DNA of 64,000 nucleotides from Hemiscyllium ocellatum (lineage: Eukaryota): positions 620,001 to 684,000 of the forward strand of contig NW_026867509.1 in NCBI RefSeq assembly GCF_020745735.1. The letters are read 5' to 3'. Under the pieces are notes generated by a model that saw only the letters and a program-made list of their open reading frames with translations, did not search any database and was not told the DNA's origin. Shown piece after piece: positions 16,967 through 30,780 of this stretch. The translations under genes and the position numbers were made by a program. How positions within the stretch are numbered: the stretch's first letter is position 1; each line of letters begins with the position of its first letter.

Positions 16967-17020
16967 GCATGATGAGGTTTAATTCATCCTCTAGAGACTG
17001 TCATGTCAAATGAATAAAAG
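16967..17020 (+). promoter_or_regulatory. Proximal promoter module of the intact GPCR (homeodomain-like TTAATT, EBF/O-E-like CTCTAGAGA, TATA-like AATAAAAG)
   Basis: gcatg-atgaggt-ttaatt-catc-ctctagagactgtca aligns without gaps to 30732-30768, upstream of the paralog. Confidence 0.6.
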
Positions 17021-17074
17021 ACACGTTGGATATGCCACAGAGGTGCGGGCTGCAGCTTTAGGTTCTCAGATAGG

Positions 17075-17144
17075 ATGCACGGACCAGCGAAAGGCCTGTT
17101 CTATGCTGTTTGCTATCCAATTCTCGCTATAATAGGTGTTCCTG
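17075..17144 (+). CDS. GPR139-like GPCR, exon 1 (MHGPAKGLFYAVCYPILAIIGVP + 1 nt)
   Basis: ATG at 17075, 23 codons + G, donor G|GTATGA; phase 1 matches acceptor at 19393; TM1 start YPILAIIGVP|ANLL. Confidence 0.9.
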
Positions 17145-18559
17145 GTATGAAATAGATTCTGAATAAGTTACTAACTTATTTTTGCAGTTACTTGAAATTT
17201 GTGGAGCTGTCGTTTCAGGATTAACCTCTATCATAATACGCACGACCTCAGTGAAAGACTTCAACCTGTGAATTTTGTATGAGTATACCTATGCTCTTCT
17301 AATTAGTTAATTGCTGGCAATGTGGAGAGTTGACATATTTGATTCAAAATAATTTCAGTACATTCATAAGAACATACTTTGATTAGATTAATGAAATATG
17401 CATTGAACACTGTGTGATATCAATTTAATATAATTCTATCTCTTATTGAAATTTTGCAGAATTCTGATTTTGAGGAACTGCAGTGAACTCTCTGAAAAAT
17501 AGTCTAACATTATGCAGTAAAGCGGCAGCGTTTAATCATCTGATTATAGAAACAGGAATAAGGGTTTTAATTGCTTTTGTACGTGAGGGCAGCATCTTTT
17601 TAAAACTCTGTGGGGTGTGGGTCTTGCTCCTGGGCCAACAGCTAATTGTACACTTCTACTTTTCACTTGAAAAGGTGGCAGGGAGCTACCATCTTGAACC
17701 GCTGTAATGCATCTGCTGTGTGTAGATTCATTGAGAATGTAGGGAGGATACTTCAGGATTTCAAGCCAGTGACAGTGAAAAGAATTGCAACACATAAAAC
17801 ATTCACTGCTTAGTCGAATCTGCAATGTGAAAAATGGACACGATGAAACAGTTCCAAAGAAATAAACTTTCCTGTAGTGATTTCAGTTTTTAACGGGATA
17901 TAAGCGATTATTTGCAAAAAGACATGAAATTTGTCAGTTGAGTGAATGCCCTTTTTTTACTGTGGTGATAAATGTTGGACTAGCATTTCGATTGAGGAGA
18001 ATTTTATGTCGTTATAATTACTGGGATTTGACTGTTGCAGTCAAGGCTACCGTTCATTACTTATCACCAAATACTATTTGAGAATCTGTGGCTGGATTTG
18101 CTTGTCAGCCCACTCCAGTGTGCAAGATCGGAAGTTTTATTTCCAAATTTTATCACAAGTAAAATAAGTGACTATCAAAGCAAAAGGCTAAAGACATGAA
18201 TAAAACATTACTTAAAAAAAGGCCAAGGAAGATCGGGCAGGTGAGCCACTGATTTAGTGATCTCTGGAGATCAGGGATCAACTTTAAAAGCTGCTAAGAA
18301 TTAATATTCAACTTGCAGCCACCCTTACAACACTCATGGAAGTGAGTGAACAATGAATGTATGTGAAACTTGAAGAATAAGATTATCTGAACTGTGATAT
18401 TGTAGACGGGAAACAATGCAAATCAGTGAACATAAGGTCGCTGGCTGAACTTTGGTAGGTGTGGACAGCAACTTGATAATCTCCTGACGCATGCAGACTT
18501 TGTTAACTATGACAGTAGTTAATTGCTCACTTTTGTTTCCCCTTGAGAACGTCGCTGTC

Positions 18560-19170
18560 AGTAGCTGCCTTCAAGCGCTGCAGCCCATCTGATATCGGTA
18601 GATCCACAGCGTAGTTAGGGAGTAAGTTCCAGGATTTAGTCCCAGTGACAGTGAAGTAATAATGATATATCTCCAATCAGGATGGGAAGTGGCTGGAAGC
18701 GAACACACAAGTGGTGATATTCTCAGCTGACGGCTGCCCTTGTCCTTCATGAAGGATGTGGTCATGTATTTAGAAGGTGCTGTCTGAGGATCTATGGTAA
18801 ATTTCTGTAGTGACTATTGTCGATCGTTTTGTATATGAATATCAATATCTGATGCAGTGTGCAATTCAGGCTATCATGCCAGTAAATCGGGCTACTTTGT
18901 CCCGGATGGTGTGCACATCTTGAGTTTTGTTGGAATTGAACACATCCAGGCAAGTTTTTAGTATTCAATTACAGTCCCGCACTTATGACTTCTAGATGAT
19001 GGACCGACTTCTGGGATTCGGGAGATGAATTGTATGCTGCAGAAGTCTGAGTCTCTAATTTGCTGTTGTCGCAATTCATTTATATAGCTGGTCTTGTTCA
19101 GCTTCTAGGTAATGGCAACACCCGTGATGTAAAGAGCCTTGCCTCGAATTCGATAGCTGGCCACTGAAAT
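18560..19170 (-). mobile_element. 3' end of a shark LINE (same family also at ~13420-13620, ~17670-17790, ~29290-29420, ~45860-46060, ~61800-62030) inside the GPCR intron
   Basis: Recurring motif gctgcag...tagggag..ttccaggatt...cagtgacagtgaag...tccaa.tcaggatgg...gctgcccttgtcctt. Confidence 0.6.
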
Positions 19171-19393
19171 TGACTGAAGACCAATAAATGGAATTCAAGA
19201 TGTTGAAAGAAAGTGTTGACATATTTTATTGGTAAATGCTTACTTGAGCTTTGGAAATTGAACCAACAAGTGGAGCAGACAGTTTGAAGATGGAAACGTG
19301 ATTAAATCGAAAAGTTTAAGGAAATCTGAGGATGAGGTGGGAACTCATATTTGGAGACCCTTGGTAACATAGTTGTTCTTTTATCTCTCACAG

Positions 19394-28039: not shown

Positions 28040-28265
28040 CAACCTTTCCAAAAAAAAGAACCCTACCCAGGCCCATTGCACACTGACTAATGCACAATGC
28101 ACTGGGGGTAGTTTAGCATTGCCAGTTCACCTGACCTGCACATTTTCGGACTGTGAGAGAAAACCCAAGCAAACACCTAACAGAAGATCGCCGGAGACAA
28201 GAATCGTGCCCAGACTCCTGGTACTGTCAAGCTAAAACGCCAAACACTGAACACTGTGGCACCCT
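28040..28265 (-). mobile_element. Degenerate HE1-type SINE
   Basis: gactaatgcac...gtttagcattgccagttcacctgacctgcacattttcggactgtgagagaaaaccc, homologous to 53183-53494. Confidence 0.7.
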
Positions 28266-28369
28266 CATTGCAGTGTTGTCTGTTCTAATCAATCACCCGT
28301 CCAAACCTTTCAGGTCATTGTCCTCGTTAATAAGTTGTAATCTTCACAATTGAGCACGACACCCCTCAG

Positions 28370-29200
28370 CAACAATATTGATATGTTCTGTATAAGGCTT
28401 TCTCTTTTTTCTCCTCTCGAACACTGTGCCTACCAAAACTAATGACCTTACTATTCTGCGCACACATTCCAGCATTTGGATGCCTTTGTACCAAAAAGTG
28501 CACATCTCAATATTTATGAGCTATTATGAGCTTTTCCGCCTCCTCTGCGCTTGGACTCAGTGAATTCGACGTTGCTCAACTCCGTCTGTGTGACGAAACT
28601 TTCCCACACAATTCCGATAAACCTGTTGACCTTTACCTTGAATATATGTCCAGAGCCACTGATTGTATACCAAGGGAAAAAGTTCCTTCCTCTCCACCCA
28701 ATCAATGCCTCTCATAAGTTTAGTCATTTCAGTCAGGACTATTTTCAACGCCCTCTGCTCCAAAGAAAACAGCACCAGACTATCCAAACTCTCATCATAA
28801 CGGAAACTCTCCAGCAAAAGCAACAGCCTGATTAATCTCTTCTGCACCTTCTCCAGTGCAGTCACACCACTCCTATAATGTGTATTCAATAATAGCATGC
28901 AATAGGTTTTTGTGCGGCATAACCAATACTTTCTGCAGTTTCAATGCGAGTTGCCTTGGCTTGTAAAGGTACCAATTCTAATATTATCTAAACTTCTTTT
29001 TCTCTCAGTGCTTCTACCTTACTGAACTCATGAAAATGCACACAAAGCTCGTGCTGATGCTTGGTCCTTCACAGGATATCATTTATTCTTTTTGCCTGTT
29101 TGTCCTCCCAAGTGCATCACCTCATAAAGATTCGAATTTAATTCAATTTACTCTTCATCAGATCATAAGAGTTGCCCGCATTGAACTATACAATGCATAT
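28370..29200 (-). mobile_element. Decayed CR1 LINE 3' fragment
   Basis: ORF 28557-28898 (HYRSGVTALEKVQKRLIR...FSLEQRAL) matches the CR1 RT C-terminus. Confidence 0.75.
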
Positions 29201-30731
29201 CTGAGGCAACTCTTGAAGGATTGCGATAATTTTAGTCGCCCTTCCTTGAGGAGGAACGTAGCTGCACCGAATCCAGCTGCATTCTTGAACTGCCCTCCGT
29301 GACTGGCAGACCCACATGCTGCTAAGACTTGAACGGCAGGACTTTAATCGAGCGACGCTGAGGCAACGACAATGTTCTTCCAAGTCAGGACAGAGCTCGG
29401 AAGAGAACTTCCAGGTGTTCGTGTTTTTGCATCGTTATGATGATCATTATAATAATAATTATTATTGATATTGATACTAATATTAATTCACAGAATGCGA
29501 GAATCTATGTCTAGACTACCATTTAATGCTCATCACTAATTGTTCAGAGGGGTAGCAAAGAGTCAAGGACATTGCTTGAGGTCTGGAATCACATCTTGGA
29601 CAGCCCATGTAAGAATGGTAGTGCCTTCTGTAAGGGCCATTTGTGAAGCAGATTTTATTTTTTCTGACAACCAACAATGTATTCATGGTCGTCATTATTC
29701 TCCCAATTCCAGATTTTTTTTTATTGTATTCAACTTATAACATCTGTCGTAATGGGATTCGGACCTTGGTCCAATGAAAATTGCCTAGATCTCTGAATTA
29801 ATGGTTCAACGGTAACATCAATAAGTCATCACCTCCCCCTAAATTCCAATATATCTGATCCCGTTGACCTTCTTAATTGAAGTGTTTGTGGACTGGAATT
29901 TGCTACAGAAGCAACTTGGTGAAATTTTGCAGTGTATTTTGTCGAATGCACACAACTTTGCTTCTGAGTGTCGGTGGTGTATGAATGGATGCGTCTGGAT
30001 GTGGTGTCAAATAAGTGGGTTGGTTTGTCCTGAATGTTGGCAAGCGTCTTGAATACTTTTGGAACTGTAAACGTCCACGCATGTGGGGGTTACCTTTCAT
30101 TATATTTAAAATTCATAAGACTTCCCTTTCCATAATGCCAACTACAATGTCTGGAATCAATCCAGTGAATCTCCTCAGAACTGCCTCCAATATGCCATAA
30201 CTTTTCACTTAAAGAGATAACAATTTTACGAATTACTCCAGCTGCCGTCTCAAGAACGCGTTCGTTTGTTGTAGCAACACTTGAGCACTTTTTATACTCC
30301 ATTCCTTTTGCAGTAAATGCGAAAATTCAATTTGTGTTTTTCATTGCCTGCTGTATCTGCAGATTAGTTTTCAAAGATTGATGCTCGAGAAATTCTAGTA
30401 TCTGGAGATTACTTTTCAGCGACTCTTGCTGGGGAAATTCTGTTCAAACACTTGCATAACCTGAAAGCAATCTCAGCTATACAATAATCTGACTCCGAAG
30501 AGAACAGAATAATTGGGCAGAGAGGAAATTTTATTTTACGTCAAAGGACATGAGTTCAGTATCTGATATCTTCGATTGTACTTGATGGAGACGCCAAGGC
30601 ATATTTCGTGAAAACGGGGAAAGCACAAAATTTGCAGCCAGCTGTTCACCTACAAATATAAGAGAATCATTCACGTTGATGATGCAAAACAACTGAGATA
30701 ATCTGTTCGTTCACTGAAATGTAACTAAGGC

Positions 30732-30780
30732 GCATGTCAGATCTTAATTATTTCTCTGGAGACTCTCACAAGGTATAAAT
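30732..30780 (+). promoter_or_regulatory. Proximal promoter module of the second GPCR (TTAATT, TCTCTGGAGA, TATAAAT)
   Basis: gcatg-tcagatc-ttaatt-attt-ctctggagactctca-caagg-tataaat, 72-120 nt upstream of ATG 30852; same spacing as 16967-17003. Confidence 0.6.

Follow-up and report, generated by a model that had tools for sequence, protein, structure and literature searches.

A homeodomain and O/E-like promoter block, probably maintained by selection, in an expanded family of rhodopsin-class receptors in sharks

A short DNA block that precedes two receptor genes of the shark Hemiscyllium ocellatum is very probably, judging from comparison across paralogs and species, a real and selectively maintained proximal promoter module common to an entire gene family. 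The block lies in a window of 64,000 nucleotides (nt) (RefSeq assembly GCF_020745735.1, contig NW_026867509.1, positions 620,001 to 684,000 of the forward strand; all coordinates below are positions in this window unless a locus is named), upstream of two tandem, two-exon genes for rhodopsin-class G protein-coupled receptors (GPCRs) on the same strand, here called gene A and gene B. It combines a homeodomain-type TAATT, a near-palindrome reminiscent of the O/E (EBF) sites of olfactory receptor (OR) promoters, and a TATA-like box. An earlier note on this DNA, made from the letters alone, had pointed out the two copies of the motif and suggested that the receptors may be chemosensory. The two genes and their promoters are laid out as follows.

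16849..16966, + strand: distal promoter of gene A, with the patches AATTTCCAGCCAGCAGTTAG at 16849-16868 and, abutting the motif, the ~35-nt GAGATAATGTGTTTGTTTACTGATTTGCAACTGAG
16967..17003, + strand: motif copy of gene A, with TTAATT at 16979-16984 and the palindrome CCTCTAGAGA at 16988-16997, then CTGTCA
17009..17019, + strand: TATA-like box of gene A, AATGAATAAAA, 56-66 nt before the ATG at 17075
17075..17144, + strand: coding exon 1 of gene A, MHGPAKGLFYAVCYPILAIIGVP plus the first base of the next codon, with a GT donor at 17145
19394..20295, + strand: coding exon 2 of gene A, intact, encoding the remainder of the rhodopsin-class seven-transmembrane (7TM) receptor
30629..30731, + strand: distal promoter of gene B, with the patches AATTTGCAGCCAGCTGTTCAC at 30629-30649 and GAGATAATCTGTTCGTTCACTGAAATGTAACTAAG (blastn, MAFFT)
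30732..30768, + strand: motif copy of gene B, with TTAATT at 30744-30749 and the palindrome TCTCTGGAGA at 30753-30762, then CTCTCA
30774..30780, + strand: TATA box of gene B, TATAAAT, 78 nt before the ATG at 30852
30852..30918, + strand: coding exon 1 of gene B, with a GT donor at 30919
32844..33744, + strand: coding exon 2 of gene B, same structure as in gene A, with one frameshift

The 37-base pattern GCATG-n7-TTAATT-n4-CTCTRGAGACTSTCA from which the earlier note had started is matched exactly at 16967-17003 and 30732-30768 and nowhere else in the window, and each copy is followed, as had also been claimed, by a TATA-like box (17009-17019 and 30774-30780). A chance match is rejected because the pattern never arises when the window is shuffled, even with up to three mismatches permitted. 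The same note had seen no other similarity in the flanks, and here it was mistaken. A sensitive blastn search aligns 16849-17172 with 30629-30946 at 65% identity over 343 columns, as does MAFFT, and this ~320-bp block spans ~225 nt upstream of the ATG, the 5′ untranslated region (UTR), coding exon 1 and the splice donor, including a ~35-nt conserved patch immediately 5′ of GCATG. Exon 2 is the only other segment of the two genes that can be aligned by blastn (67% identity for DNA, ~59% for protein); for the ~2-kb introns and the DNA further upstream, the sensitive blastn search gave no alignment at all. Since the motif lies within a paralogous alignment, it did not recur independently but was inherited within a unit of promoter plus exon 1. 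This unit is preserved about as well as the coding sequence. A third composite-like site in the window (TAATTTTCCCTCAAGGGCAT, at 14270-14289, between two N runs and 2.8 kb upstream of gene A) was considered and set aside as compatible with chance, the window holding three such strings, both promoters included, against a mean of 0.59 and a maximum of 3 in shuffles.

Conservation of the block was assessed at loci from the whale shark Rhincodon typus (L001, L004, L006 and L007), from the zebra shark Stegostoma tigrinum (L002 and L005) and from the skate Amblyraja radiata (L003, with three tandem copies). The ten shark copies comprise gene A, gene B and eight others, among them an unannotated minus-strand copy at L006 and a degenerate copy at one end of L001. 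The block is present, ungapped, in all ten orectolobiform copies with a recognizable exon 1 (from the window species, Rhincodon and Stegostoma), and it starts ~108 nt before the ATG in shark copies, or 96 nt in gene A. All ten share an ungapped core, TAATT-n3-YCTCYnGAGA-cTcTcA-n5-AATAAAT, which was gap-free in alignments of eight, and then of nine, shark promoters from the three species. Pairwise column identity in eight copies reaches 0.76 for CTCTGGAGAC, 0.75 for AATAAATGA and 0.58 for the decade containing TTAATT. Elsewhere it is 0.5-0.59 in the distal patch, 0.33-0.5 in the 5′ UTR, ~0.25 further upstream and 0.62-0.85 in coding exon 1. The TAATT, the palindrome and the TATA-like box, that is, the parts already singled out by the earlier note, are the most conserved noncoding positions. 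That the core is kept in all ten copies while introns and distal flanks do not align argues that the block is under purifying selection.

Searches with patterns and matrices point the same way. The best match to the two-copy pattern falls at the homologous position with three mismatches at L004 and in both L006 copies, and with six at L002, against a background of 8-9; with the full 26-position pattern, L005 and the main L001 copy are indistinguishable from background. When a 40-nt position weight matrix (PWM) was rebuilt with each locus left out in turn, the promoter always came out on top, with scores of 10.8-43.6 as against at most 8.9 elsewhere in the locus. For gene B, the left-out score was 34.5, against 3.1 for the best other site in the window. 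L007, a paralog with 59% amino acid (aa) identity that was fetched once the model had been fixed, scored 45.8, with 1.2 for the next unrelated site. The block was seen nowhere else in the 205 kb of fetched DNA. The earlier note had named absence of the motif from most paralogs as the outcome that would speak against its proposal; what we find is the motif in ten of ten shark copies and, in a looser form, in three of three skate copies.

Two observations on single copies or patches may be added. In the degenerate L001 copy, at L001:21435-21610 on the edge of the whale shark locus, the extra block (PWM score ~20) is followed by a decayed exon 1, and the copy is probably a dead family member. Upstream of the block, ~220 nt before the ATG, the patch AATTTSCAGCCAGCWGTT (16849-16868 in gene A, 30629-30649 in gene B) contains an E-box-like CAGCTG/CAGCAG; it is also found at L002, L005 and L006 and is weak or absent at L001, L004 and L007.

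The consensus of nine shark copies reads GcAT.tTgtaac.TAATTg.tCCTCTgGAGAcTcTcAc...gAATAAATgA. Its information content is high in TAATT, CCTCT, GAGA and AATAAAT and at every second base of the cTcTcA tail; it drops at a single central base of the palindrome and across the 5-nt linker that leads to the TATA-like box. The homeodomain core is TAATT in six of the ten shark copies, the remaining four having TAACT, TGATT, TTATT or CATTT at the same position. The box reads AATAAAT or TATAAAT in the shark copies and is weaker and degenerate in gene A and L001b. In most copies, an initiator (Inr)-like gCAGAG is found 30 nt after the TATA start (17036-17042 and ~30801-30807; columns 265-272 of A6), which in gene A reads CACAGAG. 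A conserved GAATGT lies ~10 nt before this element. From this layout, we place a putative transcription start near 17039 in gene A and near 30804 in gene B, which would give 5′ UTRs of ~36-50 nt.

In the three skate copies at L003, when anchored on their TATA boxes, TAATT or TCATT is followed after three bases by a palindrome-like element, which reads TCTC-TA-GGGT, TCCC-GG-GCCC or TCCA-GT-GGGG. Two of these elements have a canonical CCC/GGG half-site. The distance from ATT to the TATA box is 23 nt in the skate and 24 nt in sharks. The letters differ while pattern and spacing persist, which is what a constraint on DNA-binding specificity would give and simple descent would not.

Several points weigh against taking the block as a promoter module of the whole family. 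The shark PWM fails to detect the three skate promoters, and the correspondence between shark and skate, which appears as one of register and spacing in our own reading of three sequences, is weaker than the result for sharks. The sharks sampled belong to one order only (Orectolobiformes), and all copies share one ancestor, so that copy counts are not independent events. The third family copy in the window, a pseudogene described below, has no PWM or exon-1 match upstream, where the region expected to hold exon 1 and the promoter overlaps an N run (9017-9646). The start site, and even the untranscribed status of the block, are themselves inferred.

Two readings would deprive the block of its role as a promoter. 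In one of them, it is residual identity from a recent tandem duplication, or a repeat, with no regulatory meaning. The motif does lie within a longer paralogous alignment, and with two copies alone descent could suffice. However, genes A and B are old paralogs, as judged from their second exons (67% DNA and ~59% protein identity) and unalignable introns, and the block occurs without gaps and at a constant distance from the ATG in ten copies, drawn from three species, and nowhere else in the 205 kb. A neutral leftover or a repeat is rejected on these grounds, as far as sequence comparison goes, and we give it next to no credence. In the other, the block belongs to a transcribed 5′ UTR exon that begins after a splice acceptor just upstream, and acts as RNA. 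An AG does follow a moderately T-rich stretch just before GCATG in several copies, but as an acceptor this AAG would be weak, its tract being interrupted by purines, and the 30-nt spacing between TATA box and Inr-like element fits a start downstream of the block. Moreover, RNAalifold, run from the block to the ATG, found zero conserved pairs, which disfavors an element acting at the RNA level; conserved RNA structure in the block or the 5′ UTR was rejected on this result. We consider the transcribed block improbable.

The motif very probably forms the core of the proximal promoter in a rhodopsin-class GPCR family that is specific to elasmobranchs and greatly expanded. Each gene duplication probably carried this promoter along with exon 1, and selection since then has probably retained ~45 bases without insertion or deletion. 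Counted from the putative start, the homeodomain-type TAATT(G) would lie at about -60, the near-palindromic YCTC-YN-GAGA at about -51 to -42, followed by a short T-n-T-n-A tail, the AATAAAT/TATAAAT at about -30, and the Inr-like CAGAG at +1, with the ATG some 36-50 nt further on. Because the spacing is rigid, we suggest that a homeodomain protein and a dimeric factor may bind side by side, adjoining TBP/TFIID, which might impose one cell type-specific expression program on the whole family. A LIM-homeodomain protein and an O/E/EBF-type factor would be the leading but unproven candidates.

As for the palindrome, the published matrix consensus for O/E (MatBase V$NOLF) is TCCCyngrgar (PMC3247239). 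The shark element YCTC-T-n-GAGA agrees with it at the y, n, g, r, g and a positions and reproduces the one free central base, and, core position 3 apart, the conservation profile of the palindrome fits the consensus. In 11 of the 13 copies (10 shark, 3 skate), this element gives the best O/E match to be found within 200 nt of the ATG. It matches 7-8 of the nine specified O/E positions, with the mismatch in the TCCC core, and the strict consensus TCCCYNGRGA is found in none of the 13 promoters, for which reason a canonical O/E site is rejected. Of the "homeodomain + O/E-like promoter module" announced in the earlier note, the conserved TAATT and the palindrome with an O/E profile are borne out, while the canonical O/E core is absent; at the level of motifs, the expression seems a fair description and not a demonstrated identity.

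Alternative factor motifs were judged against the observed conservation, and none was retained. The distal patch of gene A contains a GATA site (AGATAA) and a forkhead site (TGTTTGTTTAC), neither of which is conserved in other copies. The TCTCGCGAGA (ZBTB33/ZBED1-type) motif needs a conserved central CG, yet that position is variable here. The spacing of a POU bipartite site (GCAT...TAAT) looks too long, and a MEIS site (CTGTCA) is found in gene A only.

Mammalian OR promoters contain homeodomain and O/E sites, often with a TATA box, within ~200 bp of the start (Young et al. 2011, PMC3247239); in the mouse, ~39% of OR promoters have a TATA box between -60 and -10 (PMC3247239). The shark promoters are similar in being AT-rich and in that a TAAT core, within ~100 bp of the putative start, and an O/E-like palindrome of the pyrimidine-NN-purine type closely precede a TATA box. 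In both, too, the module is common to a large, tandemly duplicated GPCR family. They differ in that the palindrome is without the TCCC core and the receptors are not ORs; besides, the arrangements in mouse OR promoters are variable, whereas the shark elements are rigidly juxtaposed and nearly identical between paralogs.

A second likeness is to the composite sites of the mouse Greek Islands, in which a homeodomain site is followed at a stereotyped distance by a relaxed Ebf-like site. The Lhx2/Ebf composite of Sfaktiria, validated by electrophoretic mobility shift assay, reads TAATT-GA-TCTCCAAGGA (Monahan et al. 2017, PMC5608512, supplementary file 7), and TAATT-n3-YCTCYnGAGA of the sharks bears a striking resemblance to it. 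The Ebf half of a composite is reported to accept runs of pyrimidines and purines at stereotyped spacing, recognition being impaired when 2 bp are inserted (PMC5608512). The half-sites TCTC/GAGA and TCCT/AGGA closely resemble YCTC/GAGA in the shark element. The spacer, however, is 3 nt in the shark (invariant in ten copies) versus 2 nt in the single mouse sequence compared, which makes for a thin comparison. Location differs as well. The shark element is promoter-proximal and ends at most 10 nt short of the TATA box. The mouse composite belongs to intergenic enhancers and is reported as enriched in enhancers relative to OR promoters (PMC5608512).

Which cells express the family is the point on which readings of the promoter diverge. 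It may be that an Lhx2-type LIM-homeodomain protein sits on TAATT and an O/E (EBF) dimer on the palindrome, and that the family is an unrecognized olfactory or chemosensory repertoire of sensory neurons, a reading that we hold possible but doubtful. In its favor, the palindrome profile (four positions, Y, a free base and GRGA) matches the O/E consensus (PMC3247239) and the element is the best O/E match in all but two of the 13 copies. The skate elements, although their letters differ, keep TCYC-NN-GGG in register, two of them with the CCC/GGG half-site. The mouse Sfaktiria composite is similar, with a relaxed Ebf half (PMC5608512), and TATA boxes occur in part of the mouse OR promoters (PMC3247239). 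The family itself is large, tandem and pseudogene-rich, in animals with few classical ORs (PMC6368271). Against it, the canonical O/E site is missing, the miss falling in the core; the 3-nt spacer departs from the 2 nt of a mouse site that is impaired by a 2-bp insertion; the juxtaposed composite in the mouse marks enhancers and not OR promoters; and the conserved cTcTcA tail is unaccounted for by O/E. Homeodomain and EBF factors are also active in brain, B cells and other tissues, and TAATT is bound by many homeodomain proteins. In a catshark library combining brain and olfactory epithelium, no GPCRs appear in the top 50 genes by specificity (PMC11979771), a result of little weight either way, given the low expression of any single receptor.

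The same promoter could be read by other factors in a nonchemosensory cell type, such as brain neurons, somatosensory neurons or lymphoid cells, and to this we assign about an even chance. There are models for it, GPR139 being expressed in brain neurons and the expanded Mrgpr receptors of rodents in somatosensory neurons. The absence of the canonical O/E core and the generic nature of TAATT as a homeodomain core are in line with it, and so are the V-set neighbors, at 12516-12947 in the window and 5.5 kb downstream of the family member at L004. Gene neighborhood is, however, weak evidence of co-expression. Mammalian OR genes, too, flank the T cell receptor (TCR) alpha locus. It further fits that the family is unreported in published shark olfactory surveys; the chemosensory surveys made in sharks are limited to the four classical families (PMC6368271, PMC10116579). 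Against this reading, no alternative factor fits, be it of the TCTCGCGAGA type, GATA, forkhead or POU.

Sharks are famed for their sense of smell, and the shark nose is currently treated as essentially V2R-based. It is unlikely, though worth stating on the present sequence comparisons, that the elasmobranch GPR139-like expansion is an unrecognized olfactory or chemosensory repertoire in which each gene has an Lhx2/Ebf-type composite beside its TATA box. Were it so, the homeodomain-plus-O/E logic of receptor choice would be older than the classical OR and TAAR families and not restricted to them, and V2Rs would not be the only receptors with which sharks smell. Provided that their promoters resemble the control elements of odorant receptors, these hundreds of rapidly duplicating class A receptors would offer a concrete candidate for the missing repertoire. 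Whatever the tissue, the block is a handle for locating family members and their start sites and a defined reagent for asking which transcription factors activate the family, and it illustrates how rigidly a promoter "grammar" can be preserved among old paralogs.

The spliced open reading frame (ORF) of gene A, obtained by splicing reconstruction, is intact and encodes 323 aa. The protein matches Pfam 7tm_1 (E 5.2e-22), and its best match in a protein search, at 92% identity, is a Hemiscyllium ocellatum protein labeled "probable GPR139." The search gave 1248 clustered relatives at E below 1e-10, and among the top 120, all those with a species name are from sharks, skates and rays. Database names of these relatives are mostly "probable GPR139" but also GPR142, GPR15-like, galanin receptor-like and FMRFamide receptor-like, a variety that is a sign of remote automatic naming. 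The best matches in the PDB are the solved structures of GPR139, at E 1.8e-10 (44 bits over 281 residues). Where the earlier note spoke of an expanded GPR139-like family, the expansion is clear from the number of relatives, while the likeness to GPR139 is only remote.

GPR139 and GPR142 are orphan class A receptors that sense aromatic amino acids and peptides, and GPR139 itself, like the shark genes, has two coding exons split within transmembrane segment 1. They are the best named relatives of the shark family, with which they have the 7tm_1 fold in common. Elasmobranchs, however, have hundreds to thousands of such genes in tandem arrays, whereas other vertebrates have one or two. Going by these comparisons, the family is a separate, lineage-specific set and not a set of GPR139 orthologs, and because it is only remotely related, GPR139 biology is a poor guide to it. 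The expansion is tandem and rich in pseudogenes, with two of the three copies in the window broken and three tandem copies in one 25-kb skate locus. In this, it follows the evolutionary pattern of ORs, TAARs, V1Rs and T2Rs, which is likewise one of large, lineage-specific tandem expansion with frequent pseudogenes. Our literature search found no paper on the family or its expression.

Gene B has one base fewer than gene A in a T run inside transmembrane segment 2 (GTGATAATTTTGCAG), at ~32945-32950, as seen by three-frame translation. The frameshift leads to a stop, and the 236 aa downstream stay open in the shifted frame. Apart from the missing base (32940-32955), the promoter, the splice sites and the rest of the gene look intact. 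Gene B is either a young pseudogene or the product of a homopolymer assembly error. Two further coding features lie upstream of gene A.

6740..7559, - strand: third family copy, a pseudogene with ~40% identity to gene A and several stops and frame changes
12516-12947, - strand: V-set (TCR V-like) ORF, between receptor copies

The third copy was recovered as three tblastn high-scoring segment pairs in three frames. The V-set ORF has a counterpart in the whale shark, in which L004:18026-22541 includes a V-set gene 5.5 kb downstream of a family member. These neighbors indicate that interleaving of receptor genes and V segments is common to both species.

The window also contains N runs at 9017-9646 (630 bases), 14016-14188 (173 bases) and 14567-15066 (500 bases), which cause spurious long ORFs filled with X. 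Three other ORFs, all on the - strand, at 21510-22298, 48343-48801 and 63170-63940, have a conserved stretch in common (…RDLGV.VH.SLK…LEYCVQFWSP.YR.DV..LERVQ.RFTRMLPG…) that has no Pfam match. The three ORFs look like the tails of a retrotransposon ORF2.

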